From Ophelia neglecta (lineage: Eukaryota), in contig OZ260663.1 of the NCBI GenBank assembly GCA_965285935.1, positions 104,470,001-104,534,000 of the forward strand: a stretch of DNA of 64,000 bases, read 5' to 3'. Under the pieces are notes generated by a model that saw nothing but the letters and a program-made list of their open reading frames with translations, was not told the DNA's origin and searched no databases. Shown one piece after another: positions 12,697 to 56,446 of this stretch; the first letter of the stretch is position 1, and every line of letters starts with the position of its first letter. Made by a program: the position numbers and the translations under genes.

Positions 12697-15600
12697 TCAG
12701 TTACTATCAAATAGGGTCAAGGATGTATATGGTGGTTTTGACCATTGCGCCACATCGTACAGAAAATGGTATTGCATCTGAAAAGGCAGGAAAACCGCTC
12801 TTTTATCGTCAGTAACGTGAAGAAGTCACAAAGCAAATCCTAGGTAGTTTCTCTTTACAGTAATGACTTGATATGAATTGTTTTAGCAGTTAAAGAGAGC
12901 GCATTCCGTTCCAACATTTCCTGATCGGCGGCTCTATACATTCATTACTTTCATGCATAACACTGCACCCAATACAATTAAATTAGACGCCATGAGATCA
13001 TTATCATAACTGTACTATTAATAGATACTTACCAATGTGTTGACGAATTCCGGTCTATTGGCCGAGACGCATCTCGCAGCCAGGAAAACATCTAACTCCT
13101 GATCTGCTTTCATTTTCTCCAGCATATAATATGCAGCACAAAACAGACCTGACCAAGTGATCCCGTCTCTAAAACGCAAAGAATTTGTTAATGGACAGAT
13201 AAACTATTCTGGGCAAAGTAACATTGTACTACATTGCTTTAAAATTAAAGAAGTCGCACATTTGCCGTGCTTACTCTTCATGATTTGATGAGAAATACTT
13301 AGACTACTAGTATTTAGTCTATCATTAGTCTTTCAACAAAAGCTCTCATGTTTTGCTAACTTACTCGCAATGCACAAGAATATTCCCACCGCTCATATTG
13401 GCAGAGCTCATCACAGTATCAATGAGATCAACTAGTGATCGTATGTTTGGCAGGTCTTGAACAGCCGGCCAATCCAACAGGTGGAAATGTGTGATGGTCC
13501 TCGGTTCTTCGTTAGTCTGGAAAGAAGAGTTTTATAAATACTACTATTTTGATGTTTCTTGCTACTTAATGGAGACTAAATGATATTGGAAATGGTTTAA
13601 AATGCTAACAGTCGTTTTGAGTTAAATCATCAAATAGGTAGTTATATATACTGTTTTCGTTTTCTTGAGACTCAAGTCCCGCTTCACAAATGGTCCTATA
13701 GTATCTAGTGATCTGCATTTAATCAAAAGATCTCCAAATCTTTGCTCTGGTTCCTTGATTTCCGGCCAATATACTGTTTTGGTCTGGAATAGGAAATAGC
13801 ACAATTAAATAAATTATCTTTCATCATACCTGTTTTCGTGGTAAAAAAAGAGAAAGAATATTGTATACCTCTCCCGTCTTGACCAGGGGATCGAGCATGA
13901 CGATGGTCGTACGTCTGTATTGGTAAACAAGTCTCCAAAAATCTCCCACTGTGTTGGAATGAGGTGTCGTTGTCGCGTATAAACCATTGTTAGTGTGTAA
14001 ACTCTGCCAAAAATAACAGAGCCGGCGTATAAGAAGCATTAACTCCTACTGGCATGACAAGCAACATCCAAAACGAGGATTATTACCAATTAGTATTTGT
14101 TTTTCATCAACAGTTTATTTTATATTCCTACATTATCATAATTCTTACATCGACAAACACGCCAATGATGTTTGCATTGTCATGAACTTCTGTCGATATC
14201 AGTGTGGGACTCGTGTCTACATGAAATTAAAATATGTAAATTAATTCAAATAGATTAAAGACAAATGTATGCATGTAACTATAGAATCACGGAACAGTGA
14301 AACTCCTCCATCATTTCAACATACCAAAGTCAGTACCCTCTGTCTCATGTTTAGATAAACTATCATCTTCTGGTCCATGAACATCATTCATGTATTTCAA
14401 ATGTTGTAAGACCTTTTATGAAATTAAGCATATTTCTAAATAAAAATAGGAGAGACAAACATAAACACAATTATAACAAATATTAAATTAAATCTGTACG
14501 TAACCATTAAGACCAGTGCCCTGTAAGCTCTCAACTATCGCTATTCAGTCCTTGTAGGGTAAAAAGACTAGATGAGTTTGTTTCGAAAATCCAAAAACCA
14601 AACAAGGATGGGTATAATATATTCCCATAGTGCAGAGAAGTACAAAGTAGTGCATATTCAGGTGATCAATGCGAGTGTGAGTGAAAGTTGGCTGGTTTGT
14701 AAGTGATTGCGTTTTGGGGTTTACATTTCATTATAGTAAGGTTTGAGTTGAACTACTACGATCACAGCGCTGCCAAAGTTGGATGGGCTTTACTCTGGAT
14801 ACAGAATCGAGTGATAGAACAATAATATTATATCAATCCTGTAGCATACTATATCAATTAAAAACAATAAACAAAGAGAACGTTTAGTTTTCATATACCT
14901 CGAATTCATGATGAATTTGGCAAGTTTGGTCCACAGCAGTGAGATTAGTCAGTCGTTGTTGGAGCTCAGTAATGGGGATAGCGGTGTCACCCGTGGTGAC
15001 AGCCTCCAGTATGGCGGTGTAAAGAAATATGTACTGGTCCTGATAGGCATGAAGATTAAGAAAACGAATTGGTACTTATCTAACACGACTTAATATCCAA
15101 ATATTAAAAGCAGACATAACACATTACTAAATCTTTGAAATAATCATGAATGTTAGTAATATATATTCAATCAGGAATAATAGTGATTGTCTATTCAGTA
15201 TTTGTAGCCAGACTTCGGTCTTATTAGAAATTTGAAACATCGAATAAAATAAACATGGACAAAGGCAAGGGTGAGATCTTTAATATTAAAAAACAAGATT
15301 ATACTTACTATAGCTAAAAGCATAAAACATAAGAATTCGAATTTTATAACCCGTGTGCCAACGGAGCTTTATTCTCTTACCAATGTCTGAACCATCTTCA
15401 TCCTCTCTAGTCTCATCTGACTGACAAAGGCGAAGACATCGATTTGAGACTCGGCCTTTGCCTGCTGCATCAGATAGTCCAGGGCGATAAACGTCCCTGT
15501 TCTCCCTATACCGGCACTATAAGTATAAATATTTTATGCATGATGATAAAAAGCATTTATATTTGGTAAACTATTAGTTTTTAGTTAAACTATATGTTGG

Positions 15601-18600
15601 TGAAGCTATTAGTCTTATTGTATCATTGCCTAATTGCATCTTCCGGCCTGGTATTTATAGACACAGACACATTGCACATAACACTCCGCTGTATTAACAG
15701 TAAATTAACAAAGTACCTATATACATTATCCCATCGACGGAAATAGTATCACTGGTCTCCAAGTGTATATACTATACCTGCAGTGGACTATTATAGGCCC
15801 TAGACTGACCCTGTCAAATGACCTGACCTTCCTCCGAAAGGCAATGAAGGGGTAGGCCTGCTGTGGCGTCGATTTGTCCGGCCATCTTAAGAACTGGAGA
15901 TGTCGGACAACTCTTGTATCGTTCTTACCGTACAAATTATAAATGATATTTCAAACAGATTAATAAGGATATTTGTAAATAATGATCTTGTACCTACACG
16001 CATAAGGCATGTCTAACAATGAAAGTGAGTAAATGCCATATACTGAGTCGTATTTATCAATACATATGAACCAAAGTGTAAAACATATAACCCTGACCCC
16101 TCTAGTGATATTCAGCACACAAAATGTGTAGTCAGCTAGGGTTTCTCTTCTTACAGTTTCGACCAAAATTTCATTGTATCTGTGTTCTGTACCAACATCC
16201 TCCGGCCAGTATTGTTCACTCTTTCGCTAGAAGTCTTTATATTCTTATTGACGTCGGACATGACAGTATATACGTATATTGTTATTTGAGTACGAGGTTC
16301 CAACAAGCAGTTGATGGGACATTGACGGGGCCATATATTATATTTTACTATCAATATATATCGCTTAGCACGGAGATAAAATAATTGAACATAATCATTG
16401 TTGCTCTTCATATTCATGTATACCCTTCCGTTTTCAAATGCTCTTGTAAGCATAACTATCCTGTTAGCTTCAAGTTGCCAGATCATTGCCCAGAACTCGC
16501 CTGTGGTGTGCTTTGTGGGTGCTGACATGAGAAAATATAAAATCAAGCGTTAGATTTATAGACGGTCAGCAACACGAAAATATAAGCATAGAAATAACTA
16601 AATAAATAAAAAATAATATACCTTGTGTGGCGACATATGCTCTATTCCCGTCATATCCCTGAAAACCAAAATTAACCGTACGAGATGGAGAGCGAATAGT
16701 TTGTGGTATAAGGTTATGTGTTTGAACTCTGCAAAACCGACCTATTTATGGTTATTAAACACATCATAATGTGTAACATTTCCGACATACCGTAATGTAG
16801 TTGGCGTTAATGTAGTCAGAAGCTTCTTTTTTGTTTTTAATAAGAACAACGCGAGTGGAATCATCTGAAAATATGCCGAATATGAATGCAAACTTTGAGA
16901 TTAATTTAAATGACAATTTTTGATATTCAATCATTGTATTGTTAGCTTTAAATGTAGTTTTACGCGGTTTTTTTTTACTAATAAACGTTATTACTAGTTC
17001 TGTTGACGCCACTTTGACGGTGTTTGGTAATTTTAGATCGAATTAATGGCCTATTTTGTTCATGATTTTTGAGGGGTATGTCGGGTATCCAGTCCCGTTT
17101 TTTTCACTCACAAGCTCGGATATTTGTAAACCTATTTCTCAGCTTATTCTCAGGCAGGCTAGCAGCTATACAATCCAGCATTTCTGTACTTGGTATCGCC
17201 TGTAAGAAAGCGAATGCCATATAATCTTATGCTTTTATTAATATATCGTGTCTGCGAGTTGGATAATAAACACAGAAATAAAATGCATGCACTCTAATAC
17301 AAATGTATAAGCTTACGATGAATTCTTCGCAGAATCCATTGTCAACCTTCCCCTTGTTAACATACGACTGCAGCTTGGATAGTTTTATAATTGTACGTTC
17401 CAACACAACGGGTGTATTGACATTGGCATAAATAACATCATCTCTTCCTTCACCGTTTCTTGGAATCATTACAGCTTCGTTATTATCCCGTGGCATTTCT
17501 ATTGCAAATGACATTTTAGTATTTTCAGAAATTATGCAGTCATTATAGATAAGCAACCGTCATCTACAGATACTGTATGTCGAATTGTCCCTAGCGTAAA
17601 TGATGACCAGTATTTGTTCAATCTGGGACTTGATGTTTACGGAGAAAAACACGAAAGGTCTATTTCAAAACATCTTGTCAGTGGGTATATTGACCTACCT
17701 GAGGTAGCATGCGACATAGATTGGGCGGTCCAGTTAGTGCCAGCCATCATAGAAAGAGTGTGTTCCGGGATGTTGTTTTTACGTGAGGTTCTGTTCCTGT
17801 CGGATATGTAGCACACCATATTGTGTGTGCAGAAATAAACATCATATTGTCGAAGTCAATTCGGAATGTCATTATATTCAAGTCTATGCTGTAATTAACA
17901 CAATACCTGTTGAGGAACAAGAATATTCCGCTGCCTATAAGTATAACCACTAACACGGAAATACTTATAACCAGGACGGTCTTCCAACTAGATGAAGAAT
18001 CTAATATAGGTGCAGAATCTATTGTAGGAATTTCTGCTGTGCCTTCTCGCCGCTCAGTAGTAGGCGACAACGATGTTAACCCTATTTATTGTAATACATA
18101 TAAACCATATTTTAGTGTAAATGTTCTGTGAATAATTGATATTCAACGGGCTAATCTTTTATGTGAGGAATTTGATACAAAGATTATAGATATTAACTCT
18201 TTAGTGCAAACAAAACTAGATAAACCTCTGCTGTTATCCCTTAATTTTGCATGGAAACTGTGTGTCGTACAATATATTACCTGTCGTTCGAGCCTTCAAT
18301 ACATCCATGTTTGATCGGTTGTTCGATTTCAGATCCATAAAAAGCAGACTACCATCCTTCGTCCAGAATACCCTCCAGTAAAACTCGTACTCCGTGTCTG
18401 GTTGTAATCCGCTCACGGTTACCTGCCATTCCCCCTGTCCCTGTGAGACGTCGTCATACTTTGTCCAGTTTGTAAAACCCAGTGGTCTGTAGTATATCCT
18501 AAATCCCACACAATGAGTAATCCGTTCGTGGGAATACATATCTGCCATCCAGGTCCATGTTACAGAGTGTGTTGTTGCATAAACAAGGGTTCTGTTCCAG

Positions 18601-21600
18601 AAGTCATTAGATTCTCTTGCCAATATGTCTAAAATCCAAAGTACGTATTGTTGGTTTCGGGCACTGTGGCGGCAAAAACCATTTAGTTTGTTTCTTCTAA
18701 TCTATATAATTCATAAGATGGCTGGCGTAAATTTACGATAAGAAAAAGGACTGCACTCACGTATTTCTATGTCACACCGTATTCCCGTCCTCCAGTATAT
18801 AGTATCCGCGGTCCTTTTACTATTACACCCGTCTGTGCACTCTCCCGTCTCCTTCACACAGGAATGGTTACGGCAATGGATACTGCAACAATTCTTTCCA
18901 TACGTGTCTTGAGCACATTCTGAGAGAAAAATGATATTATAAACTAACGTAGGATTGCACACAAAATCACTGTATGTTTGGGTCAAAATATATATGAAGA
19001 TACCATGCACATAATCCAAAGTTATTAATAAAGAACCATCATTTAAATATGTTTTACCTGGATCAGTTAGTTGCAGTTTCATAAAAATTTTAAAATAAGG
19101 TTTTGCAAGAATGAGCATTGAGAACTGCTCTCGTTTGGATGTAAATGTGTATCTATTAATTTATTGATTAAGATTTGTATGAACAGTTTGCTGGATGGAC
19201 CGATGCACATAGCCAGAAATGCTAAGGAGGGTCAGGAATTCAACGTAGCCCCGAGTTCAGGGACTCGTTTACTGATACTGTTTCATATTGACCTCTTATT
19301 TTGAGACAGCTTTAATCATCACAATTAACCAAGACTCTCCAAGGGCATATTATACGTTTGTCCAACGTTGATCCCTGCCGCCTTTGTTTTGTGTTCTGAC
19401 TCGCATCTTTGAAATCAGTTGACTCCGAATTGCACGTGATTATCAAGTTTAACGGTTTTTAAAAGTTTTTTTTATGTTGTTTAACTGTTCTAAATTCTCC
19501 CCGGGAAACCCTCACTCTTTTATTGTGACTCAACATATGTGTAGCGTACAATGACATGGGTATGAAGCAAGTGCACATGCACTTTAGCCACATGAAATTT
19601 TTTTCATCTTTCATTCAGAGCTAACAAATTGCGTGCAGACCATTACTATACAAGAACTGGGCTGGTCCGAGAATTTAACCCTAAAGAGAATAAGCCCCAC
19701 CTTACTCCGACACTAAATCTAATATACCCTTCTCTCCACCCCCCCCCCCCCCCCACACACACACAAACACATAAATAAAAACTGAAAGTAAAATGTAGCT
19801 GTATTATGAACATGCCGTACCAGATATTTAGGTCAGTCATAGGTTTCGAAAACCTTTAACCAAGTGGATACATTTCTACAGTTAATATGCAAAAACACAA
19901 ACCAAGCGAAGTTGCTTAGAATGGAATGGGTCGAGAGTGTGTGTGGTTTGTGTGGGGGTGGGGTTGAACCGTTTCTCGCCGATTTCTGCGGAAATCTGGC
20001 GCCGGTTTTGCATCGCTTGCATCATCGATGTCATTTTTGCGCAAAAAGGCAGATGGTCGGGATCATAGGCAAATTTATTGTTCATCAGCAGTTGTGCGCC
20101 GGTACCTGGCTGATTAAGTTTGCAGATGCACTCCTTGGAAAATCGACGCATTTCAGAAATTTCGCAGATATCGGCGCAAAACGGCACACCTAATTGACCC
20201 CACTCGATAAAAACATTTTACACTCCGACCACTCCCTGTGTACTCCAGTTGGACATTGATTACAAAGTTTACGACACATGACAATAAGAGGACTGTGTTA
20301 TGCTGTATTTACTCAATCACCCTGATGGCAATCAAATCGCTTTATGGAATGCCAGACAGCTTTCTCCTTTGATCACAGCCATTTAGTTCAATATTCATCA
20401 ATAGCATACACGCAGATGGTCCTCCCAGGCGGTGTCGAAGAGTTGACTATAAGTTTCATAGATCTTTAGTGAACTGATTACAAGGGCACACACAGAGCAA
20501 TGGTTTGTGTGCTTGTGTTTTACTTACCCACTCGGATATCACATTTATTTCCAATCCACTGTATACCATTCCTTCCAATAGCACACCCCTCAGTACACAC
20601 GCCTGTCTCTCTCACACATGACTGGTTAAGACAATGAGGACTGCAGCAATTCACACCCAACGTCCCTGCAGCGCATTCTGAAAAAACAGTAGAAACAAGA
20701 AACAAACGCAGCATATTGTTGCATTTCTGTCTATTAAATAAGGAATGGAATATTGTTTCTACATCAGAACTGTTAACATTGCACTTTTATTATTGTTTCA
20801 TTATTGTTCGCAGCAAATTGCCCGCATGCAATTCGCCACTAATAAAATAACTTCTAGTATTACCATGACTGTACATTTAGCATTTAGTCTCCATGTGAAT
20901 AAACTTTTCCCAAGGTAAAAGACACTAATACCGTATTACTTTATAACACACCCTTCGCTTTAAAGGAAATTAAGGTAATGTGACTTTGAGAACTTGCAGA
21001 TGCACTCCTTGGAAAATCGACGCAGTTATATGTTAATCACAGTTAATTAACTTGTGATAAGTAGCCGAACATTTCTGAATTGCATATAGTGCATATATTG
21101 AGCCAAGTGAAAGATCCCGCACACGGAACACTGATGTTTTACGCCAGGCACATACTATTGTCACCCAAGGAGCATTACGTACACTTCCATTATAATCCTT
21201 TATCTATACATATTCAAGATATTGAATGGTGATATGTCTGGCTACCTTCGAACCAAACTTGGAGCACTGACGACGCATAAACCTTTACTTGTTATGCCTA
21301 AAACAAATGTATTAGCACTGCAGAATATTTATTCTTTGAGCCCTAATTGTATTGCCCATTGATACATTTAGCAACTAATCCATCACAACTTATTGTTTCT
21401 GCGATCTAGATATGTAATCATCGGATATGCGAAACCGCTACCTTGATTAATTCAAGTAGTATGTGTATTAGATCCAAGGACAGCTTCCCTTAAACTTATA
21501 AAGTGTTATCACCAGCACGACCTATCATTCTGATTATTGCTCCTTCCAGCACGCCTTCAGACTGTTTCAGTAAAAATTGCCTTTTGCGAGATCATTGCCT

Positions 21601-24600
21601 ATTAAAGCACTTTGTTTTAAACAGTTATATGTTTATTTGTGTTTTTGTAAACCTATGTACGAATTTACATAAAACCTTGTTTGTTTGGGTCAAACATGAA
21701 CGCCAACCTAGGTGTCGAGGTAAGTTGGTTTAAACATATGTATTTAGTTATGTTGGATGTTGCAAGAAACGTAGGGAATATAGAGTGTAATCTTCCACGG
21801 AGCCTAAGACTAAAACATTATATTTACAAGCATGCGATGAATGAAGGAAGAGCAAAAAGCACACAGTAAAGGAAATGGGAAACAATTTAGCATATCTTAG
21901 CCTAAAAAAAAATCACATAAAATGCATATTGACAATTAAAATTATGAGTCCAAAGGTAATAGCTAAGCAAACTGTCATTGAAGAAATAATGACGAGACCC
22001 TTCAGGAGACTACTTTCTGGACTAAATGTGAAATTCATTGAAGACACATTTATTCTTACCAAAAATGATATTTTTGGGTTGATGCGTAAAAATGACAAGA
22101 GAAGTGGCGGGGGAAGAACTTTCAGTATCACAAACGCAACTTGGTGTGGCAAAACAAAAGTTGAAAAAACGATAGTAAAGCCGGCAGCTACACGCCTGAA
22201 CTGAGCCTGAATGATATGGGTATATTGTATATTTACCTTTACAGTCTGGTAGCCGGAATCTGTCTGGACATTTACTACAACCTGTGTAGTCATCACAGGT
22301 ACTGGTCTCCGGACAGTCAGAGCAATCTACAAAGTTATCAAATCGGAACAGACGAGTTGGTATGACCTTAGTCAAGTAGCCACGACAGGAAAAGGAATAG
22401 AATTAAAGTCCCAAACGCGAGAGATGATCTCTTGTATATGTGTTAATTTATACTATGATTGAAAATATTATTTAATTAGACCATATAGAACTTTTCTCGA
22501 TGAGCGCGTCTCTTCCAAATATATTGCAGCATAATTAATTTCGATGCAATAAATAGGTATGATTTCTCTGGCTAACTCTGAAGAGAACAATATTGATAAT
22601 AATGAATGACATTATTTTATTTTTTGAAGAAAATGATCGACTATCCAGATTCAGTGATAAGATGACATATCGATTATTTTCTAGCAAAATAATTTGAATA
22701 AAAGGTGTTGACCCCTGGAGGGTATTTTCTTACTTATATATCTTCGCCCCATGACAACTACCTCGCACAGCTTGAAGCTGGTACTGTCGTATACTGCTAA
22801 CGCCACCTTACTCCCTATCATAGATGTCCCATTTTTACATGTTACTTCTGTGTACTGTGTATGGTTTTTGTTGGCGAGTGTACTTTGCATACAGATCTCA
22901 TTAGCTACTGGGTCTTCTGAGTTTTCAATGTAAGTATAAAGCCTTACATTTTGAGCTGCAAAAACAGAATCCTCCCAATCAATTCAAACCTCTTTCTTCC
23001 ATAGTTACCTTACTAGTCAAATAAATTCCTGCTTAGTGAACACAGGTTTACATATTTATTTCTGCCTTAACCGAATGGAGAAAAAAGAAATACCTTCATT
23101 GCCACCGTACACCAATACACGGGAAATTTTATAAAGATGTCCGAGTTCCACCATCCACCAAGGCTGAGCGTGTTCTCCTTTTATGTATGAACAGTGTTGC
23201 CTATCGTGGGTCTCGACCGCTACGCCATCTACTGCGAGGTCAGCAGTTCTATCTTTCCCATTTTGTAAACCACTTTGTTTGGCTGATTTACCAAGAGCAA
23301 CATTACCTGTTGAGGTTCGACCAGGTATTATGCTTTTATATATTGACACGCAATTTTAAACTTAAATTAAGTGTGCTGAAGTATTTACTGAAAACAGACA
23401 TTAATTTATAAACGTGAAATGAATCATCGGATTTTAAAATTAGTCTTTGCAATGAACCCAAACCCCACTTAGTAACTGCCTTATTAAATCACACAGACTT
23501 AGTATACAGGGTACTGATTTTGCCCTACAGTTAAAACGAGCATTCAGCCACTGGAATGCACGCCGAGAGATAGCCTACAAAACAGAAGGAGTATGTACGT
23601 CGAATATAACTGGAAAGAGAAAATCAAACCAAATCTGCATCCTGGACCGCTCCATGGTATGTCCCCCGGACTCCACCTCTCACACACCACCCCAGGACGA
23701 CAAGCGCCATTGTCATGATTACAGATGTCATCTTCACACCGACAAGGAAACGCACACGTTTTGTCGTCATGGCCGTATCGACATGAACCTATATAACATG
23801 TGATAAGCAGGAAATAGATTTATAATAAAAAACACATTTACTTCTCTCTGTGAAGATAGGGGGGCTTTTTTGTTAAATATGTTAGCATGAGGGAAAAATC
23901 AGATTGGTCAAATGACATATGGGTCAAGCCCAATTAATTTTCATATTGTCTTCCTTTTTTGTTTGTTTTATTACTTATCAGTTTGTTGTTTTTTTGTATT
24001 GTCGTGGTTTAGGGAGTAAGAAGGGGATTACCCAATTTATTGATTATTGTTACATGCTATATCGTAGTGGTATAGTTTTATCAGACAATATTAAAAATTT
24101 TAATTTAGTATGGCTTTCGTCCTTAATAACTTATGACAAATATGACATTATCTTAATGAATATCATGGTCAAACTATAATACGCATTACTATCCGCATAT
24201 GAAGTCCTTGCCAAAATTTACTGGACCAAGGAGGAGTATTTCATTTACTGGGTTTGTATGACCAGATGACATTCTCCGCTGCGGTTTAGCTTTCACAATT
24301 CACAAACATGGGATGAGATGGACTTGATAAGAAAAATGTCCACTACCTGTCCACGCCCTAAAAATAAACTAGCACTATTTTTCAATTTGGAACGCAGACA
24401 AATAAAAGTCTTCCATAGTACAAGCTGTGCGTTAATTGTCAATATAACACCAAATATATAGTTAAAAAAAATACATTCGGTCACTGTGACACCGCGACTA
24501 AATTATTTCCCATTTCCGCTGCCTATACTAACGTTCTTTAATGGCAAAACTAAACGCCAACTTAACATTGTAGTGAATATGGATTGTATTTCAATTGAAA

Positions 24601-25778
24601 TGGATTCATTTCAATGAATTTAATATTAACCCGTTAACACACGGTTTATCTCGAAAATATGTTATTTGCAGATTCGCAAATTGAAAATATAAAATCTTGC
24701 TGAACTACAAAAAAAGATAAAATTGATTGGTCGGAACATATGTACAATAGCAACACTTGAACATCCAGTTGTAAATATGTTGCGGTATTATGGGCAATTG
24801 AATTCCCCTAATTTTTTCCTGAAATAAAAGCACTTATCATTAATTCTCCGAGGAACAAGCTCTATTTTTTCAGGGACTAATTTAGCTAAACGACTATGGT
24901 ATTTACGCAGCAAGACGCAAGTTATTATAAAAGGATATATAGCAGGTGATAAATTGTCCAATTTTCATATCAAGTTATTTGAAGAGATCACTAATTCTGA
25001 ATATCGAATTATGTTTATTACTGTATAAGGACACAGCCAGAAACCAGCCGGATTACGTGTATTCGGGTCTAGTATCAGGTCCTAATTGGTATGAACCCTT
25101 AACAAGGAAATAGATATCTGACTGCATCTGACGCATCTGACTGTTAAACTATGCCGACAAAATGTTCAGCTGATGAAAGCAATATTATATTGAAGATGAA
25201 AATGAAGCAAGGGTCAGCGTATTTGGACGAAAAAAGAAATCTTTATTATAAACAGATATGGCATGCAAAAAGACAAGAATATTTATCGCTTGTGTAAGCT
25301 TCGTAACCAAACTGCCTTCACATTCATATTATAAAGCACCACTGTAGTGGAAAAGGGCATGCAACTAAGGCCAGCCCCTTTCGACAAATGTATTATTTGT
25401 AATTTAAATAGATTTATGAATAAGCTAAGAATTGGCATACACAATTCAGTTGATGTTTTTTTCTGACATTGAGCTGGATATCAATAATTATTGCGAGTTA
25501 TACTCAATGAAAACAATGAAGAGCAACTACTAAATATTATATATTTACTTAGTCCAGGCCTTAACACAATGGACAATATATAGGCCGTATTGAGTTTTTT
25601 TTAGATACTAGTCTGATATTCAAACCAACCATGGCTTACTTTCTGCGCGTTTAATACTTATTTAACATTTCAGAGTAAAAAGCTTAGAAAATGTGATTTC
25701 AACTTTACCTAGACCTTTAGCAACCGCCCAATGTAAAAGTACAACTAAGAGAGATATCTGTAGCATGGCCGCCATCAT
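12697..25778 (-). CDS. Gene A: receptor-type protein tyrosine phosphatase with SP, EGF-like, F-type lectin-like, EGF-like, FN3, TM, PTP D1 and D2 domains (~1164 aa, 26 exons)
   Basis: Phase-consistent GT-AG exons: 25709-25778 (signal MMAAMLQISLLVVLLHWAVAKGL), 23630-23788, 23094-23306 and 22734-22955 (NVALGK..AVDG..CS..WWMVELG..LCEV), 22237-22326, 20528-20677, 18761-18919, 18281-18628 (FN3, GLQPDTEYEF), 17907-18081 (TM), 17699-17796, 17317-17498, 17112-17199, 16791-16864 (DYINAN), 16622-16658, 16424-16521, 16098-16226 (QYWP), 15778-15923 (WPD..VHC), 15381-15516 (SAGIGRTG..MVQT), 14899-15039, 14337-14412, 14149-14216, 13869-14003, 13652-13783, 13365-13516, 13033-13168, 12697-12777 (stop). Confidence 0.88.
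19915..20240. mobile_element. Probable MITE-like insertion in an intron of gene A
   Basis: GC-richer block not found at the matching position of gene B; left GGAATGGGTCGAGAGTGTG is an imperfect inverted match to right TACACTCCGACCACTCCCTG. Confidence 0.35.
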
Positions 25779-26676: not shown

Positions 26677-26904
26677 CTACAGCACAGCAAAACTCATTGG
26701 TGGTAAAGAAGTATTTCTTTTGCAATTCGCTCTGGTAAATTCTAGCCATACTGCAACATTAATGTGTGTGTCTTGGATCTAGCCAAATACGAATTTGTCA
26801 TATACACCCAATAATTATATTTTACTATGTATGTCGGAGGAATTGAATCATCTACTTTTGTGGCTTGTTGATTGCTTTTGTTATTATGTTGGCATGTCAT
26901 TATT

Positions 26905-44000: not shown

Positions 44001-45117
44001 TGTTAACTGCTAACACAACACCCTTACATATTTTTGCATACTACTTATATGTTGGTCACACAATAGCAAAACACGAACTACTCTGCTGTTGATTAGTAGC
44101 TATTGATGGGTTATTCACTTGCTATATTTTAATTTAGTGAACAAAATGCTCCTACGAATTCTCTCTCTCGAAAAACTCATTGTATATTCATTAACGTGGG
44201 AGATAAACAGATACAAAGACTAATACTAGGCCATTATGCGAGCACGGCAATACCACATCATCGACAGTGCTATTTACTGAGTCTAACTCAAGCCATTATG
44301 CTAGCATATCACATATGATAATTTGTACCAGTTTTTAGAATAGATACTTTATTTAGACTATCGCAATAAATGTATTCATATCTAACGAGACCATGCCTGT
44401 ATTCGAAATTGGATAATTTTATTTGAATAAAGTAATTGAGGCAATTAGACCTTATCAGGAGCAAAATTGACTTGAACCCATTGACAAAGATATTAATCCT
44501 TCTTGTCTGACTGATTAACATGGCCATCAGCCTGCTCATGTGAGCTAATAAAAAGGCAATATTGTAGTTTAGATGGAATGATGTTTTTAATCAATTTGCT
44601 GTATAATTAACCGAACTAATTCATGTTCACATCTGGTAAGCATTAATGTAGTACTGAACGGAATGCAACCAAGGCCAGAGCCTTTCCGAAAAAAATGTAA
44701 CATTTGCTATTTCAAACCGAGGCATGAATAAGCCGTGCATTGACATAAAATCTTCCGCTGATCCAAGATGAATAATATTTCTTTGGTGCATTTTTTATCC
44801 GAAATATCAGCAGAATAGCAATAATCAGTTCATTGCGAATAAATATATATGAAAAATGAAAGCCTCCTACAAAACAGTATATATTAAGTCCATGACTTTA
44901 CAAAATCCATGAATCAATATACGCCATATAAACCCCTCGACTAGGATGATTTGGATAGTAGTCTGAATCTCAAACCAAACATATTTACTCATTTGGTATT
45001 AAATTTATATTTCAGAGTAAAAGGCTTAGAAAATTTAATTTCAACTTTACCTGAAACTCCAACAGATGTCCAATATATAAGTATAACGACGAGCAATGTA
45101 TGAAGCACGTCCGCCAT
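29043..45117 (-). CDS. Gene B: paralogous lectin/EGF/FN3 receptor PTP (~1198 aa, 27 exons)
   Basis: Exons 45051-45117 (signal MADVLHTLLVVILIYWTSVGVS), 43056-43214, 42546-42758, 42191-42412, 41680-41769, 40111-40260, 39533-39622 (extra), 38806-38964, 38345-38692, 37946-38120, 37738-37835, 37312-37511, 37109-37196, 36806-36879, 36637-36673, 36439-36536, 36109-36237, 35792-35937, 35466-35601, 31270-31419, 30734-30806, 30542-30609, 30262-30396, 30046-30177, 29700-29851, 29373-29508, 29043-29114; phases match gene A; WPD and HCSAGIGRTG intact in D1. Confidence 0.88.
31551..35240 (+). mobile_element. L2-group (L2/Crack-like) non-LTR retrotransposon with intact ORF, antisense in an intron of gene B
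   Basis: Long APE-RT ORF; 3' stem AGCGCC (35164-35169)...GGCGCT (35197-35202); (TAA)n tail; flanked both sides by AATATATATAT; the matching intron of gene A (~15151-15175, TGTTAGTAATATATATTCAATCAGG) is the empty site. Confidence 0.93.
31827..35048 (+). CDS. LINE endonuclease/reverse transcriptase polyprotein (1073 aa)
   Basis: APE motifs NARS, ITETW, YRPP, GDFN, SDH; RT motifs LDLSAAFDTV, GVPQGSVLGP, YADDTQLY; C-terminal LHWLPV..RI.YK typical of the L2 group; no stops or frameshifts. Confidence 0.95.
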   Translation: MSYPCACLLFVMCLGTAQGGARLVYSREQLVSLKPGGGISAFSPVTQPVQSVIRRNKAGVNEPKQCLIDSGPGKIPTLVSIHRCPQLQPTRPPRYLKEIPQLRNPVNCEKLTCTTNGTDSNLSVCVFNARSVKNKTTLINDHIASNDHDIIGITETWLRPGDADTVTVGDLVPPGYDFHHLPRESGYGGVGIIFKESIKSTKGTLQRNKIFEAIDIALKTEIPTHVIVVYRPPPSARNKLTVSQFLDEFSAFLEVKTLIQGHLLILGDFNFHVTDKSDSCAQRFNDLIQSCNLQQHVSEPTHESGHCLDLVLTRADQTCIRDLHVACPISDHFAIHCNVYSSKPQNEKCQIKYRSFKAIDMEKLTEDIRLSPLVSKLRDTHDTPVHILVDSYNTTLSAILDKHAPVKTKVVTKRVKSPWYSDDIAQAKRSRRKLERLWRRTKLVVHRQMYRTQSNLVCDMIDSAKQEHYTNKIQENPADQKTLFKVIDSLLHKEKVSPLPTCSSSETLAESFSNFFSEKISKIQSGLQIARRSYQSPSSEDSLFSGESLQCFSLTSPDELRKIILNAPQKSCEVDPLPTWLLKESLDDLLPVLTHIINQSFRAGVVPHKLKEAVVRPLLKKSNLDKEQLGNFRPVSNLSYLSKLAERVVANRLTSHLSVNNLDEPFQSAYKKNHSIETALIHVQDDILCSLDEKKSVLLVLLDLSAAFDTVSHSTLLNRLQNRIGIGGVALKWFESYLSDRTQSVNIDAYSSKPRLLACGVPQGSVLGPLLFSIYTLPLGDIMRTHQVLYHLYADDTQLYAAFHPNHLGQVRTNLEQCLDHVRCWMAHNLLKLNDTKTEFLIIKPKRIACEVPETIRVGESTIVASPSARNIGAVFSNDCSLDSHINKVCRNAFLHLRNISKIKRYLSKEALLTITHAFITSKLDSLNALYTGLPESQIAKLQRVQNAAARMITGSSYRSHVTPLLRDLHWLPVKQRIEYKIYLLTYKCLHGQAPGYLSSLISRYCPARSLRSSSHFNLDLPRVRTTTYGHRRFSYAAPMLWNQLPVNVKLADTLTDFKKKLKTHLFKLAFQL

Positions 45118-47540: not shown

Positions 47541-49170
47541 TCCTTGTCCTTTTCTGGACTATTACATGTACATTATATAACATGGCGAAAATATGACATA
47601 AAAGTTAAACACACTGTTGGTCGAATGGGACATCGAATGGGACATTCCGAATTAACCGGGCATTTCGATAAACCTAATAACACCAGCGGGGTGTGCATAG
47701 AACCGACTGTGGCATGGGGTCCTGATTGACAGCTGTGTTTTCCTCCACAACGGCGAAGTGCCTAACTCTTGGCTGTAACTGTTGCTCAGGGGCCTTTGAT
47801 TGGTCCGTCTCCGCAGAGTCTTGGCACTTCTCTCGCGAGTGAAGGCCAATTTTGTCATACGTGAGGGGTACCCGCTACGTGTACGCGACAGTAATCGTAG
47901 ACAGCAGAGCGCTGATGCTTCAAGTCAGATACTTACAACTGGTCACATAATGTATTGATAAAGTCCTCTCTAGGCAAGTGGCCAAACTTCTTAATTTCGT
48001 TTGACGAAATCTTCCTCTGTCTGAGTAGTTGTAAATCATTCGTCGTCACTCTTATATTGATATTTATATAATTACGATGGTTCCTGCTAAATGCTATCTT
48101 TTCACCCACTACGGATTTGTGTAGGTCGACCAGGAAAACACAACTACATATTAACAAGGTGCGACTTCATCTTGGAAAGAATAGCAGTATTTACATGCTT
48201 TAATCTCCCCGGATTGCGAAAAAACAGTGACACACTGTATTCAAATTTTGTGCTGCACACACAGCACCATTGGTATTAATTTGTTTAATGCCATGAGACA
48301 AATTATGACTCGAGTATTTCCGGATCTGTCCACACATGAATGGATCAAACAATGTTGTATTATACAACATCCCTAATCATGGGTTTTCCTCCTCACACTC
48401 TTAACATGCGCACACCTGCCAGGAGCTCTCAAGTAAGATGATTTGAAATATTGAAAGAAAGATAAATGTCCACATCAATTAACATGAAAAACAATCACCT
48501 CATTGGACATGCATCGCTGAGTCTAGAATGATAAATGAATCACTTAACACAGAAGTTATGTCAAAGTCAGTAATTTTTAATGAATTTCAATTTGCAATCA
48601 TAATTCTTGTCATCAAATTTCCATTGAATATATTTCAATCGATTATTAACATAACCATATCTTCTAACAGTACCATAACTCGTCTACATTCGCAGAGACT
48701 TTGTCCTGAATTCTAAACTATTTTCTAAATCCCTGCTTAGCATTCAAATCCTTGTTCACTGCAAATCGAATACAATGATCTCAACGAAATTATTTTTGAA
48801 TTTCTTTTGCAGAATCCAGTGGACTGGTATATTTACACCTTATTATTTTATCTGTTAAAGAATATGTACGTTACCTAAAAGCATATATTAGGTATTCGGT
48901 CAAAGAGGACTTTTGACCTGAATTAAGAATGATACCTCAAATGTATTACTATTCACCACATAGAGTCATTTATTTATGCAGAATGGTGCTTGACTATCTA
49001 CAATCGTATTGCATGTTGTAAGTCTTATAAATCTGACATGAAAAATATGTACTCTTTTAAGCGGACGCAGATTCTCTACCTGATCAACAGTCAAAGAAAA
49101 ATATATGGGAATAAAATCTTTTTAGTAGATATTGGTGTATAAATTTGTTGGAAAAACGTCTTTAAAAACT

Positions 49171-52100
49171 TCATTTACCATACTGGTTGGTAGTTGATAT
49201 TTCTGGTAGCTCATAGGCATGCGCTCGTTCGTCCTGAATGCCAAAGGTCGTTTGCTGCAGCTCATCGATATCTTCGTACAGTGGAGATGACGGTATTTGG
49301 GAATGAATAGAGTCATGGCCGAGTTCTCTATCGGTGTTATGAGAGGCAGGACCCGAGCGCTCAATCTGGGTCTTCATGTTCCTTAATTTTCTAATATACA
49401 TCCTGAAAATGTTGGGCAATTGTACTTTGAACAGAATTAATGTATTTAAAGGTCATTTCGTGACATTAATAGAGATATAATCTGTTTCGAAAATATGAAG
49501 ATACCAAAAACGACTTAATATAGCAGGTGTGATTTCAATAATTTTGAAATTATTCAAATTAAACTACAACATACAAAGAAAAACTAGACGACTAAGTCTC
49601 CCCCCCCCCCCTCAAAAAAACAAAACAATAATGACAGGATGTTGCGAGGTCTTCCAACTCATTCGTAGCCAGTCCCCCCCCCTTCCCTCATCCCCCCTCC
49701 TCCTTCATATCAAAGCAATACATTTTTGTTTTGTCATCAATTTTACATTGTCCTAAATGCCTATTCCACTGGGAGGAATTACCAACTGCACCTTTTTTTG
49801 GGCAGAAACAATGTGGACGAGCCTGACCCCAACTAAGGAGCACTTTCTTTTATAAACCCACATGATGGGAATATGTTTGTCAGATATAACGCCATATGAA
49901 TCACGGCTTGCTAGGTAATTAGCAAGAACACATTGCCAAGTTGTCCTAGGCAGGTTCATATCACACCCCTAACATTTCGTTCTGAGACAACTAAGTTTCC
50001 ATTAGAATTAAAAAGGGGGGTAAGCATCAAGTCTCATGACCCTAACAGTAGATAAGCATAAAGTTTCCGGGCCCTTATAGTAGCTAAGTTAGTATCCAAA
50101 ATGTTTGCCGCGGTTGTGTGCTTGTCTTTGTGTTTGGAGCGTGATTACGGGAGGGGGTGGGTTGGAGTGGGGGTGGGAACATAACAGCCAACAAACCGGC
50201 CCATTACATCTTTCTTTTTCTAAAGAAAGCAACATCTGCATTAAGTCTACATTCACGTTTCCTGTCTCCAGGGAGTGAACAGGAACGCCCTTTCCATGAA
50301 ATAATTGTTCTCCGTGTGAAGAGAAATTAAAGGTACATGAATCGCTGTGTATCGACTATGCGTGTGATAGTATGTTGTCAACACATAGATTAGGACGATA
50401 GAAAGCCACGCACCATAGACAAACCATCAATCCAGCTATAACTGCCACGAACACGACGGCACCGGCAGTAGCTCCACCAATCACAGCCGCGCTTACTCCT
50501 GAGCCCTGCGATGACGTATCGCCTTTCAGGGTAGCCCCGCTTGATGATACACTACTGGTCTGGGCCCCGTCACTCGATGGTGGTGTCGTGGATTGTGTTA
50601 TATTTGGTATTGTCTTCGTGGTTCTTATTGCTGGTAAGGTTGTCGTTTTTTCATTTGTAGTTGTCTGTAGCGGATTCTTCGTCGTAGCATCTGCAAAAAC
50701 AGTAAAAAAATGGAATCCTGGCAAACAGAGCTAAAGTCAATACTCAAGAATGATTCATTTCATCGTTCCCAAACAGTAATAAACATCAGCTGCAGGCCCA
50801 CAAGTATCAATCCCCAGGTTCTATACCTTTATATAGGGTGGCCTGTGGCTACGGTTTCCTGATGATATCAGACGGATTAAATGGACTCTTCTTGATTAAA
50901 TCTTTAGCTTTGTCAGAACAGGAATTCATTAGAGTTAACATTAGAGTACAAATGGGTACAATAAGAAGTGGTTTAAATTACTCTATGGTATGAGACATGC
51001 CTCTAAACAAATCAATCAGTGATTAATATTTCTATGATGATAAAGCCCTAGATAAAGGACAATCTACGATCGACTAGGATAAAGCAAAGACAGTGAGAGT
51101 ACCAGTCAATGAGTCGGTTGGCAGGGGAGTGATGAATAGAAAATAAAATGAAAATAATCTATATCATACTTTAACCCCTTCCAGGATAACAGTTGCATCT
51201 ACAATGTGCCCAATTAGTGTCCAATGCTTGTTGCAAAGCATTGCAGACGCTTACTCTGATGTAATAACCTGATGTAGGCCAGACGATTTCATGGGGATTC
51301 TTACACAGTCTTGAGGGGAGTCTTGAATTTTTGGTGTCTTATCATACCAATAAAGAAACATTTCAATACCATATGACGTCTTTGGCTTTCTGACTTCCCT
51401 TCCAGGGAATGTCGAGAAGGTGGATTCTGCTCTTACAATACGTCTGTACCTGATGTTATCAGATCGCAATGACCTAACATTCCTCCACAATGTTAAGGGT
51501 ATCGTACGCTACCCACTTTCTCAAAGTGGCGTGTGCTTTGTCAACGGACCCATATCAATTAAGAGTAGTGTTGTACTTACTTGCCTGCACATCACACTGC
51601 TCCCCAGTCCAGGTCATCATATTACTATCAGTAGCACACCCCCCAGTACAGACCCCTGTCTTCTTTTCGCATGCCCCGTTTAGACAATGTGGACTGCAAC
51701 AATTCTTTCCAACTTTCCCTCGAACACATTCTGAATAAATAAAGAAATACAATAAACAAAAGGTCTACCTTTGTATATATTATATCTCATTATCACAGCA
51801 CAGAAAAATGGCGTGGGGAACGCAGGCACCGATGCTAAGACAAAAATGGCCAAGAAAACTGTACCCATATGTATTCCCTTACCCAATATATACAACTTTG
51901 CGACACACATGTCCAAATTAAGATCAAATTATTCCCATATCATCTATCCAATTATACGTTCGAAGCCTTCTGTCTTATTTCCTATGCGTCTTTATGATGT
52001 CTTTGCTGGTAAAATTCGATTCTTTATCCAAAACTACTTTGTTAGGAGAATGTTCTTTGAATGTAAATCAAACTTTCTGGGCATGCCTGTTAAATCTGTT

Positions 52101-55100
52101 CATTTTTAACTCCACGTCTGTACTCAGAATCACACGGACCATTAAGAATGTAGCTTCGTATCATGTTGTCCTATTAATTTGGTTTGTCACATGTGTTCTA
52201 TATATCTTATGCTTGTTTGGTTTATTTAGCAACTGTAAACTTCCCATACACCTGTTCATAAACAGCTAATACAACTGAAATCGAATTGTAATATTGCGTA
52301 ACGCTGTCGACTTTACTGCCTACCTTTACAGTCGGGAAGTTTGTATCTATCAGGACACTTCCTACACCCATGGTAGACATCGCATGTACTGGACTCCGGA
52401 CAGTCAGCGCAATCTACATATATAACACAATAGAATGGAGGAAATGGTATACACTTATATCAGTCAAAGACCACGCCAAGACGAAGAGTTGAACTGTTAT
52501 TCCCAAGACTATTGAGTGAGTACAAAGGGGGTTCCTACGTCTCTGGCAATTGTTTTTAACATTTTTTTGGGGGCAATTTCAAAACTGAATTATTTCGTTC
52601 AAGACTACCTGCAGTTGGTATCAACGAGCGTGGCTATTTCAAAATATAGGGCTGAATAATGCTAAATGAATAGACCGTCTTAATCATTAGTGGTGGCATA
52701 TGGGATAGAACGAGTGTGAATAATCTGACTTATGCCCTTATATTTTATATATGTCGTCCTGTCAGCTCAACGTTTTGATATAAATAAAATATTCAACTTA
52801 TCTAAAACATTCTAATGTATGTATGCCTATTTCCAGAAAAAAAGGTGAATTACCTATATATCTTCGTCCCATAACAACCACCTCGCATAGTGTTAAGTCG
52901 GAAGTTTCAAATACCTGCAACACCACGTTACTCCCGATGATAGGCGCGCCATGTAAACATGTTACGTTCGTGTATTGTGTATGGTTATTGTTGATGAGTG
53001 TACTATACCGACAGTAGTCATTAAGTAATGGGTCATTGGAGTAGTTTCCTATGCTGGTAACAAAGTTAACCGGGTTACCTGGAAATAGGGCATATCGTTT
53101 GCAATTTAAACCTTATTCTGCCAGATATACTTTACTTGATGATTAAAATTCCGACCTTTTCCCAATTAAGATATATGTTTATAGACTTATCAAATGGTAC
53201 AGGGCATTATACCTTCATGGCCACCATACACTAATACACTCGATATAATATGCAGATGTCCAAGTCTCACCATCCACCAAAGCTGGTTTTGTTCCTGTTG
53301 TATATATGAACAGTGTTGACCATCTGTGTTCTCCGTAGATATACCATCTACCGCAAGGTTAGCCAGTCTCTTTTTCCCGTATTGAAAATCACTCTGCAAC
53401 GCTTCTTTACCAAGTGCCACATTACCTGTTCAAGTTAGAGCAGACGTCAAATCATAGTATGTTGACAATCAGAGTTTATAGTATAGCTATTCACTAATTA
53501 ATGCATTGATTGATCTATTGTATTAATTATTGTGTTACCTTACTTCATGTGAATTATAGGAATCCGGATGTACTTTGTAGTTCAATTAATCAACGTATCA
53601 AAATAGGGCTTGGTTTCTGAAACGTTAAATATACTTTTATCTTCTTTCTGTCTCGTTGCATGTCACATGACATGTCACACAACCCATTGGTCTTTAGAAC
53701 AATTGTACACTTTTTAAAGGAATACTTTCAACTGCCTTGATAATGCGTAGATAGTATTAACAACCGTTAAGTACGGCCAACTAAAGTTTGTGCCCGGCAG
53801 ATAAAAGAATACTAGTTCATACATTTATTCCATATTCCACAAGAATGGGGAAGCATATTCTTGATCTTCTGGTTTCACTTTATTCACTGTTTTGCGTTAT
53901 ATGTATCACGAAATGGAAACACTGAAATGATCACAGGGCAATTGCCTCCATATCATCGAATGCATGTTTTTGTTTAAGATAAATACGGAGAAACCTTACC
54001 AAACCCGCATCCTGGCTCGGTCCACTGCACATTACCCGGACTCCATCTTTCACATTCCACCCCAGGACGACAGTCTCCAGTGTCAAGGTCACAGATCCCA
54101 TCGATACAGCGACATGGAAACGCACAATTTTCGGAGTCATTACCATATCGACAAGAACCTATGTTATAGTAAAGCATGTAATGTGACAATCGGGAAGAGA
54201 GAGTGATTTAGGTCAAAAAAAGGTTAATGTTCAATTTGTTTCGAGATATAAGAATAGTGTGTACATTCGTATACAGTTGCATATACACAGATGTAAGCGA
54301 GTCTTTGGCCTGGTATGCCGGCCTCTTTCTACTTCGAGAGTATGACTACTTAACCGACATTTCGACAGCGCGTGTCGATACTAAAATCACTTATATGTCT
54401 CAGGAATGGTTTCAGAACGCAAGACATTTTAATTGTAAAATAAGTTCTTAATAAGTTCTTAATAAATATCTTATATGTTATCTCGTTGCTGTATAATCAA
54501 TATGTAGAGGCAATTCCCCACACTCCCCTTACACTGCACGCGTGCTAGTAGATGCCTTTACACAAAGCTCATACTTAAGATAACCTAAGTGAATGGTATT
54601 CAAAACACTACATGCAGATGGGTGGAAGCCCCACATTTCACTGCCATACAAAAAGTATTGGCTTAATACAGGTCTAAAATATAGAAAGTGAAACATTTAG
54701 TGGTAGCTTACCAAATGATTTTGTTCATTCTTTAGATGCCAACATTGCATTGAGCGCCTGGTCTTTTAAATATACATAATTTGATTTGAAAATATCACCA
54801 GTAATTCTCTGCGTTTCTGGAAGAATATTGCCTATATACCTGTACTTTTGAACCCGTTCAATAACGTGATCAAATCCAAATTAATTTTCATTTTTACTGT
54901 CAGCTGCAAAACATTTTCCAAAAATCATATATTTTTGATCAAAATGTAGATAGGCCATTGACCTGAGTCTGTAGACCATCCGTCGAGTCTGACAATAGAA
55001 TAAGGTCGTCTTCCCACAGTAAATGTGTAAGAGGATCAGATCCTCATCAATAACAATAACATGATCCTCTTGACCTACCCTGATAGGCTTTCTTATCGGC

Positions 55101-56446
55101 CAAATATCTAAGGAAGAGATCGGAACTCCCTGGTTTAAACCAATCAGACATTCAATGAGATCAGTAATCCCCTCTACACTCCTACCTTTGTACCTGGTTT
55201 TAGAATGAAATATTTCGGAGGGTGTCGATGACCGTGTAAATCCGATTTGATTAATATAAATAATAGGATAAGCCTGTTAATAAGATCGGATGCCTTGGAG
55301 AAGTCCACAAACCACACGAAAACCCTTATCCTATACAGAGCTGATTTTGGATAAGACCAACAAGAATAAACATTTTGTCGGCAGTCTGTGAATCTTTCAA
55401 ACACCCCCCATTATGAATGTCTACTGTTATATGCTCCGTTTATAAACCGAAGACGATGAATCACTATGATTTCGAATATTTTCTCAATCACAGGTAAGAT
55501 GGTAATATGTCGATATTTAGTTACAACCGATTTGTCACCGGTCTTGGGCACAGGTACCCGCAAACCTAGTTACAATCACGTCTCACAACAACGCCGGCCG
55601 CCGCAACCACCTCGCAACAATTTTTTTTTCGGTTACGCGGACTTTAGGGCGATACACAGACCTATACTGGGCTAGTACTCGCAAACTTATATATATATAC
55701 ATATATAAATGATCATGAAATATTCTTAGCCTTACCCAATATATCATGCTATAACAACACTTGTTGTAATACAGTGCATTATATTCATCACTGTTTGTTT
55801 GAAGAGATGACTCATTTAGAACATCACAGTAAGTTTACTATCATATACGTAGATCATACATTGAATCCTGCTTGGAAACTTCTATTTTATTATAATAATT
55901 GAGTCAATTAGATCTTATCATGTCCACAAATGCTGTGTACCCGTTAACAAGGATATTAATACCGGAAGCCTGTCTGTTTTACGATGTTGACAAACTGTTT
56001 GTACTTGCCTATAAAAATACAGCACTATTTTAGTGGAGACTGTATCGATACTAGGGCCAGGGCCTTTCGACAAAAGATGAAATACTTGCGATTTAAATAG
56101 GTATGAATAAGCTGCGTTTGGCATACATATTTCATTGATTCAAGAAAAGAAAACCTCATTTGTGCATTTTTTACCTGCCATTCAGCATATGACCAATAAC
56201 CAGTTCATAGCAAGTTATTCGAAATGAAATACAGAAGGGCACTATAGTTTATACTTATTCAGCCAGAGGCTTAACGCAGGAAATAGGCTCTACACAACGT
56301 AACAACGTAAACCTCTGTACTGGAATGTTTGACAACAATCTGACTCAAACATAAACAATAAATTATATAAAAAGCTTACCTGAAACTCTAACAGAAGCCC
56401 AATAAACAATCACAATTGAGAGTATGGTTGGAAGCACGACCGGCAT
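49171..56446 (-). CDS. Gene C: phosphatase-less paralog; SP, EGF-like, F-type lectin-like, EGF-like, Ser/Thr stalk, TM and short Tyr-motif tail (~470 aa)
   Basis: Exons 56380-56446 (signal MPVVLPTILSIVIVYWASVRVS), 54000-54158, 53213-53425, 52854-53078, 52324-52413, 51581-51730 (sizes/phases as in A/B), 50414-50690 (Thr/Ser-rich stalk + TM) and 49171-49402 (tail with LYEDI, AYELP, QYG). No PTP exons found between here and gene B. Confidence 0.82.
54560..55450 (-). mobile_element. Decayed non-LTR retrotransposon RT fragment in intron 1 of gene C
   Basis: Broken frames give FVDFSKASDLINR, LTHLLWEDDLILLSDSTDGLQTQVNGL (YADD-box equivalent) and VIERVQKYRYIG. Confidence 0.75.

Follow-up and report, generated by a model that had tools for sequence, protein, structure and literature searches.

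Predicted receptor tyrosine phosphatases with F-type-lectin-like heads in a tandem array of Ophelia neglecta, and a putatively tail-swapped relative

The classical tandem receptor-type protein tyrosine phosphatases (RPTPs), represented in vertebrates by PTP alpha and epsilon (subtype R4) and by LAR and PTP sigma (subtype R2A), are type-I membrane proteins in which a first phosphatase domain (D1) with complete catalytic motifs is followed by a degenerate second one (D2). Well-studied animals have only a small, conserved set of RPTPs, most of them without a known ligand. The 64,000 nucleotides of the Ophelia neglecta genome analysed here (the window; positions 104,470,001 to 104,534,000 of contig OZ260663.1, GCA_965285935.1, a 762-Mb assembly, given below as C5:104470001-104534000) carry three neighbouring genes, A, B and C, whose coding strand is the minus strand, as judged from their stop-free frames. 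The products of A and B are predicted to share the topology, the complete D1 and the degenerate D2 of the classical enzymes, and the best solved-structure matches of their D1 exons are PTP epsilon, alpha, sigma and LAR. No vertebrate RPTP subtype from R1 to R8 is known to have an F-type-lectin head set between cysteine-rich (Cys-rich) modules together with a single fibronectin type III (FN3) domain; an earlier note on this DNA had likewise said of the classical subtypes that they are not defined by an F-type lectin ectodomain. Against the handful of classical tandem RPTPs, the family to which these genes belong has more than 100 genes in one genome. With a diversifying head on a conserved phosphatase, it would provide a natural series for the study of ectodomain control of RPTPs, and it would add a new candidate class to the expanded recognition receptors of invertebrates.

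F-type lectins (eel agglutinin, striped bass FBP32 and the fucolectins of bivalves and amphibians) are homologous to the heads of A, B and C across both halves of the domain, and have in common with them an N-terminal strand, part of the calcium site (h-h-D-G), a W-W strand and a C-terminal L-C-E-V strand. The three proteins differ from them in having lost the fucose motif (its first Arg is replaced by Gly) and in being predicted membrane receptors instead of secreted lectins with tandem domains. In Drosophila furrowed (CG9095), a single gene without a phosphatase, the domain occurs alongside a C-type lectin domain and many complement control protein (CCP) repeats. In two reviews of F-type lectins (one of them PMC5712786) the domain is listed with pentraxin, C-type lectin, CCP, FA58C and transmembrane (TM) partners, and no phosphatase is mentioned. 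In full-text literature, a search for F-type lectins or fucolectins together with receptor phosphatases turned up no account of this architecture, and one snail genome paper reports fucolectin, MEGF and PTPRK among the expanded families, without a link between them.

Vertebrate paired receptors (KIR, Ly49, SIRP, Siglec and PIR) resemble this locus in their clustering and in the placing of one type of ectodomain on different cytoplasmic ends by exon shuffling. Their heads are nearly identical, the inhibitory member recruits a phosphatase through an immunoreceptor tyrosine-based inhibitory motif (ITIM), and the activating end is composed of a charged TM residue and an adaptor with an immunoreceptor tyrosine-based activation motif (ITAM). 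In O. neglecta, by contrast, the heads are ~60% identical, the phosphatase is built in and the short tail of C has none of those motifs. Clustering and co-duplication are present at this locus and near-identical ectodomains are absent. The reading preferred here, with a probability of about 0.6, is that C, a tail-swapped member of the recognition family that also includes A and B, evolves separately from them, probably signals on its own and is not their ligand-matched partner. This reading is ranked above a ligand-matched partnership, which the earlier note had proposed as part of a possible innate-immune or allorecognition cluster, and above a neutral by-product of gene turnover.

The window was compared with itself, and its exons were searched against contigs of the same assembly. 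To place the exons of A, two divergent paralogues (at 105.06 and 98.17 Mb) were compared with it by tblastx, and its junctions were fixed as the best-scoring frame-keeping introns between in-frame anchors; exons were searched singly, and the frame continuity of the spliced models was followed by phase bookkeeping. A, B and C are predicted to be three intact genes for type-I membrane proteins (Table 1). The product of A would be composed of a signal peptide, a Cys-rich module, the F-type-lectin-like domain, three further Cys-rich modules, FN3, a TM segment, D1 and D2. All 26 exons of A map in B, with AG and GT kept at every internal splice boundary and internal exon lengths that are equal or differ by multiples of three. 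A search by size recovered the head exons (159/213/222-225/90/150 bp, bounded by AG...GT, all in phase 1-1) once per gene and co-linear, as expected from the description of three tandem, co-oriented genes in the earlier note, whose outer limits were also exact (12697 is the last base of the stop codon of A and 56446 lies in the ATG of C). In every scorable paralogue on the same chromosome the AG and GT of these exons are kept (21 to 24 acceptors per exon), and equivalent signal-peptide exons are found in the paralogues L001, L003 and L005 too. The exon inventory stood for the shared head chain, and had missed an extra 90-bp exon of B as well as the fourth Cys-rich exon that A and B have ahead of FN3; in most paralogues, the 90-bp Cys-rich exon type is found a second time, downstream of the 150-bp exon. 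For C, an AATAAA was recorded ~200 nt downstream, and this gene has its own TM and tail exons and stop codon.

The product of C would consist of a signal peptide, a Cys-rich module, the F-type-lectin-like domain, two Cys-rich modules, a Ser/Thr stalk, a TM segment and a tail of ~72 residues with three tyrosines, an end that had been described correctly beforehand (tail length ~75). C appears to be a chimera, in which the shared head chain was joined to the stalk/TM segment and tail of an (EGF-FN3)n receptor (EGF, epidermal growth factor) by intronic, phase-compatible recombination, because homology to A extends down to 51568 only, homology to the donor genes covers intron, exons and flank from 51268 to 48501, and the donors have no lectin exon. 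Recombination within the 300-bp interval between these limits would keep the reading frame, because both families use phase-1 introns there. Over the captured 3' module, with its introns and 3' flank, C shows 74-88% DNA identity to two genes, L006 and L007 (102.19 and 103.56 Mb), whose upstream exons encode alternating FN3 and Cys-rich modules and which have no lectin exon within 27 kb upstream. The tail exon of C has 26 matching places on the chromosome (its own included), 21 of them without an internal stop. Four of the 26, again counting C, are 89-100% identical and lie ~3.9-4.0 kb downstream of a lectin exon; another 13, at 74-82% identity, are found at 100.9-103.6 Mb, where no lectin exon was reported, and in that region the FN3/Cys-rich family has at least 13 such tail exons. 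The tyrosines of the tail (in Y-E-D-I, Y-E-L-P and a C-terminal Q-Y-G-K) are kept in most C-type copies and in the donor family. A protein search with the stalk/TM frame of C yielded no match, a result that carries no weight for longer proteins. With its breakpoint and donor identified, C would illustrate how phase-1 introns let a head be re-wired to the signalling end of another family, a process assumed, and rarely caught, in the origin of vertebrate paired receptors.

The loci L006, L007 and L030-L033 (C5:102.19-102.22 and 103.56-103.59 Mb) were recorded as a separate receptor family with the stalk/TM/tail module of C.

The heads of the C-type genes (C, L005, L010, L018 and the dead L023) form one clade with 95-99% identity, whereas their identity to the phosphatase-type heads of the array is 59-68% in every case (54-63% over the lectin exons), so that the chimera would have arisen once. 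For the second lectin exon of C, the best match genome-wide outside the C type is 63%. Between C and the phosphatase types the synonymous divergence (dS) of the head is 0.77-0.96, with a ratio of non-synonymous to synonymous divergence (dN/dS) of ~0.3; the TM/tail module differs from its donors by a dS of 0.13-0.23 and the C-type copies differ among themselves by ~0.05. The idea of C as a sibling with the ectodomain of A and B does not hold at this divergence, architecture alone being shared. Over 8.5 kb, C has 98.6% DNA identity with the copy at 104.25 Mb, and the pair C and B appears to have been duplicated as a block, because the dS between C and L010 (0.054) and that between their downstream neighbours B and L011 (0.037) indicate a similar age. 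Four intact C-type copies and one dead one exist today, and each intact copy lies 5' of a phosphatase-type run. The intact copies keep all eight exons, all splice sites and an open frame; L023 (C5:104261100-104267600) is a pseudogene with an in-frame stop in the stalk exon and without the TM half or the tail exon.

At least 24 genes, A, B and C among them, make up a tandem array of ~1.2 Mb, and the family to which the array belongs has more than 100 genes on the same chromosome. The first lectin exon has 24 close copies (at least 121 bits) at 103.83-105.06 Mb and well over 100 more distant ones in other clusters on contigs C5 and C7, and 18 close copies of the D1 signature exon fall within 103.83-105.06 Mb too, with hundreds of candidates elsewhere. 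When the maps of the first lectin exon, the D1 signature exon and the C tail exon are combined, four runs of genes are found, each led by a C-type gene that is followed on its own strand by two to seven genes of the phosphatase type; the run of the window is inverted, the other three being on the plus strand. Inside the window, self-comparison revealed a segmental duplication (11324-25994 vs 27803-45358, 66-92% DNA identity, interrupted by a 3.7-kb insertion) and a third partial copy of the segment at 51568-56139. At C5:104.63-104.67 Mb, two loci (L027+L034 and L028+L035) have head, FN3, TM segment and first juxtamembrane exon, and no PTP exons in the following 9 kb, which constitutes a second route, by truncation, to phosphatase-less copies. 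Among the phosphatase-type neighbours, one carries a stop in the TM exon and another in FN3. The array shows birth-and-death turnover, because it has truncated and stop-bearing members.

When 15-18 phosphatase-type genes of the array are compared, the two lectin exons have dN/dS values of 0.55 and 0.92 and the three Cys-rich modules, at similar dS, values of 0.13-0.34, the lectin exons evolving 3-4 times faster at non-synonymous sites than the Cys-rich modules that adjoin them. Replacements in the lectin exons are patchy, between invariant core motifs. Such a pattern is consistent with a recognition surface that has diversified while its scaffold stayed fixed. For the lectin exons of A and B, strong positive selection was considered and rejected, the dN/dS between the two genes being 0.62, that is, below 1.

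In the preferred reading, the family would be composed of diversified recognition receptors in which the surface of the lectin fold varies and the scaffold is fixed. Engagement of a ligand by A or B would lead to local tyrosine dephosphorylation through D1, and D2 could have the part of a regulatory pseudo-enzyme that it plays in other tandem RPTPs. The tail-swapped C would signal by itself, its phosphorylated tail offering docking sites for SH2 domains: Y-E-D-I is presumably a Src-type site (Y-x-x-I), although the same motif would also fit an endocytic sorting signal (Y-x-x-hydrophobic), and we take Y-E-L-P to be a Crk/Abl/Nck-type site (Y-x-x-P), in each case by matching short motifs. Several observations weigh against this picture. 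A dN/dS below 1 is no proof of diversifying selection, and the loss of the fucose triad described below may mean that the heads bind no sugar at all. The SH2 and sorting readings are short-motif matches, and constraint on the tail among C-type copies is not shown by dN/dS (0.4-1.0, with very few substitutions). Gene conversion, and not a late capture, could be the reason why the tail module is less divergent. With one dead C-type copy (L023) and several broken or truncated neighbours of the phosphatase type, some intact-looking copies may be on their way out as well.

Two alternatives were considered unlikely, and to the same degree. According to the first, C and the neighbouring phosphatases are true paired receptors that share a ligand, the tail of C activating and the D1 of A and B counteracting it, possibly by dephosphorylating C itself. 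The identical head architecture and exon phases, the position of each intact C-type copy at the 5' end of a phosphatase run, the co-duplication with a phosphatase neighbour (C/B and L010/L011 being of similar age) and the tail tyrosines conserved across copies and donor family would all be expected from such a system. A shared ligand is harder to reconcile with heads that are 59-68% identical at a dS of 0.8-0.96, with the most variable positions falling in the lectin exons and with the finding that no phosphatase gene genome-wide closely matches the lectin exon of C. Moreover, the tail has no ITIM, ITAM or immunoreceptor tyrosine-based switch motif (ITSM), as judged against the consensus motifs, and inspection of the membrane span found no charged residue. 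Together with the loss of the fucose triad, these features weaken the paired-receptor idea from which the analysis of this locus started.

According to the second, the C-type genes are functionless products of birth-and-death turnover, intact only because they are young. That one of five C-type copies is dead (a stop in the stalk exon and no tail), that truncated and stop-bearing phosphatase-type neighbours are common, that tail dN/dS is 0.4-1.0 and that the copies differ by a dS of ~0.05 only would suit this explanation. The head lineage of C is old, with a dS of ~0.8 to any other head, and kept a dN/dS of ~0.3 along that long branch; four copies retain eight exons, splice sites and open frame, and most copies, like the donor family, still have the three tail tyrosines, all of which speaks against this explanation.

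A broader proposal, slightly less probable still, is that the whole family could be an invertebrate counterpart of the paired immune receptors built on a different principle, in which a hypervariable lectin-fold head is combined with either a built-in tandem phosphatase or, through repeated capture of exons, phosphotyrosine-docking tails; the C-type tails would then be direct substrates of the co-duplicated phosphatases, and ligand-driven co-clustering would set an activation threshold without ITIM-recruited SHP enzymes. That the head exons of C are alternative 5' exons of B, by read-through or cluster-type splicing, is very improbable: B follows immediately downstream of C in the same orientation and a C-to-B splice would be in frame (all head exons being phase 1-1), but C has its own TM and tail exons, stop codon and AATAAA, B has its own signal-peptide exon, and the eight-exon unit recurs intact at three other places.

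The head domain of A, B and C is predicted to be a homologue of the ~140-residue domain of F-type lectins, as had been proposed for the two exons that encode it. A profile of the first lectin exon matches the solved structures of FBP32 (3CQO, E 9e-8), Sm-hPAF (3LE0) and eel agglutinin (1K12) and, in the same search, that of a pneumococcal fucolectin-related protein. Against a protein library it matches 1016 members at E<=0.001 and 201 at E<=1e-10; the library members scanned carry F5/8-type-C Pfam domains (10 of 10), and fucolectin or fucolectin-like is the name given to most of those that were looked up. The second lectin exon, for its part, can be aligned to a clam fucolectin at its C-terminal strand motif. 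A single lectin exon reaches a Pfam score of 20.8 against a cut-off of 27.8 bits, because the domain is split between two exons that were not joined. The top 150 library hits of the first exon are all multi-domain fucolectin-type proteins and none has a PTP signature, although single-domain relatives may rank lower.

The fucose motif of F-type lectins is H-X24-R-X-D-X4-(R/K) (PMC5712786). It is not kept in these heads, which have Tyr at the His position and G-x-E for R-x-D, the last basic residue being kept as R in A and as K in B but replaced by N in C; loss of the triad is common to all 24 genes of the array. A like loss in Drosophila furrowed has been read as changed or lost sugar binding (PMC5712786). 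Because the canonical fucose-binding triad is gone, glycan binding by the heads of A, B and C is uncertain, and we infer that their ligand need not be fucose. For the cation-binding motif, defined as h-h-D-G-x with x small and hydrophilic, A, B and C all have A-V-D-G, as do nearly all of the 24 array genes, but the residue after it is Val or Ile.

The label "EGF" given earlier to the Cys-rich modules agrees with their spacing of six and eight cysteines. Their best Pfam match is Stabilin EGF (E 0.012-0.19, below cut-off), the searches of these exons yielding no Pfam match above cut-off and none among sequences of the Protein Data Bank (PDB), and structure models of the modules are of low confidence (predicted local distance difference test, pLDDT, 53-60). 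"EGF-like" would thus be a description resting on cysteine spacing and sub-threshold Stabilin-EGF matches.

Beyond the head, A and B are predicted to be receptor-type tyrosine phosphatases in which D1 is catalytically complete by motif and D2 degenerate; a signal peptide and a single membrane span are present ahead of the PTP domains, and the FN3-TM-D1-D2 order proposed before is confirmed by Pfam, PDB and motif matches. D1 of both genes has a complete Cys-X5-Arg signature, WPD loop and Q loop, and Phe for the usual Tyr in the phosphotyrosine (pTyr) loop; codons split at D1 junctions restore a Tyr (in the pTyr-loop region) and a Ser (in the active-site loop). The PDB matches of D1 exons are PTP epsilon (2JJD, E 1e-22), PTP alpha (6UZT), PTP sigma (3SR9, E 3e-16) and also LAR. 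The D2 exons match profile positions 41-79 and 129-176 of the Pfam domain a second time, and the D2 signature exon has its best PDB stretch in D2 of PTP epsilon and matches D2 of PTP alpha too. In D2, the WPD loop has Ala for Asp, and the signature Arg is Trp in A and Arg in B (13033-13168 vs 29373-29508). Between A and B, dN/dS is 0.30 in D1, 0.62 in the lectin exons and near 1 in D2, FN3 and the TM segment, D1 being constrained. Their introns diverge by 3.5-28% in a mosaic along the gene, which suggests gene conversion. An assembly or haplotype artefact was rejected as the origin of the pair on account of this intron divergence, of a long interspersed nuclear element (LINE) and of the extra exon.

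Table 1. Positions of features in the window (position 1 is its first letter).
Feature	Position	Strand	Remarks
Gene A	12697..25778	-	26 coding exons, ~1168 aa; no in-frame stop; stop codon 12697-12699
A signal-peptide exon	25709..25778	-	70 bp, phase 1; ATG, hydrophobic core, GT donor
A head exons	23630-23788, 23094-23306, 22734-22955, 22237-22326, 20528-20677	-	AG...GT search
A F-type-lectin-like domain	22734..23306	-	two exons, 23094-23306 and 22734-22955; predicted by homology (see text)
A FN3 exon	18281..18628	-	348 bp, phase 1-1; Pfam fn3 28.0 bits, cut-off 25
A transmembrane exon	17907..18081	-	175 bp; hydrophobic stretch of ~25 residues, basic residues in next exon
A PTP D1	14899..17199	-	eight exons; Pfam Y_phosphatase (PF00102) above cut-off on single exons
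A PTP D2	12697..14216	-	six exons, degenerate; Pfam Y_phosphatase 32.0 and 26.0 bits
Gene B	29043..45117	-	paralogue of A; 27 coding exons, ~1202 aa, intact; sole stop 29043-29045
B signal-peptide exon	45051-45117	-	67-70 bp class, phase 1
B head exons	43056-43214, 42546-42758, 42191-42412, 41680-41769, 40111-40260	-	AG...GT search
B extra Cys-rich exon	39533..39622	-	90 bp, phase 1-1; absent from A
Gene C	49171..56446	-	8 coding exons, 470 aa; all splice sites canonical, no in-frame stop
C signal-peptide exon	56380-56446	-	67-70 bp class, phase 1
C head exons	54000-54158, 53213-53425, 52854-53078, 52324-52413, 51581-51730	-	AG...GT search
C stalk and TM exon	50414..50690	-	277 bp, Ser/Thr-rich stalk; basic stop-transfer run begins in next exon
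C cytoplasmic tail exon	49171..49402	-	232 bp; three conserved tyrosines
C captured 3' module (putative)	48501..51268	-	part of an intron, stalk/TM exon, intron, tail exon, 3' flank
C recombination breakpoint interval (putative)	51268..51568	-	A similarity ends at 51568 (just past the 150-bp exon), donor similarity starts at 51268
LINE in B intron	31548..35224	+	antisense to B; gap in A/B alignment
Relics between B and A	26529..27083	-	D2-type PTP exon fragment 26529-26693; GPCR fragment 26745-27083

The LINE in the intron of B contains an intact open reading frame (ORF; 31827-35048, 1073 aa) with a reverse transcriptase domain (RVT_1, 117.5 bits) and an endonuclease domain (63.1 bits), whose best public relatives are 49% identical at most. 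Downstream of A lies an intact single-exon gene for a rhodopsin-family G protein-coupled receptor (GPCR), at 4756-5814 on the minus strand (352 aa, Pfam 7tm_1 119 bits). Of the relics found between B and A, the PTP fragment scores 20.1 bits with Pfam Y_phosphatase against a cut-off of 20.9 (E 5.5e-4, profile positions 173-221), and 26907-27020 is 84% identical to 5242-5355 inside the GPCR gene. The presence of D2-type PTP and GPCR relics between B and A suggests that the ancestral duplicated unit was composed of a phosphatase gene and a GPCR, one copy of which decayed.

A G-rich minisatellite lies at 46656-47513 between C and B (48-50-bp unit, ~17 copies, GC skew +0.45) and is open in all minus-strand frames as a Pro-rich pseudo-ORF; being non-coding and outside gene C, it was rejected as the mucin stalk of that gene. 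Upstream of C, a 273-bp tandem repeat (57799-58616) is present in three copies with 97% identity. Elsewhere in the assembly, the small contig C223 carries a mitochondrial COX1 (L029) with 8 TGA codons under table 11, as expected for the invertebrate mitochondrial code.

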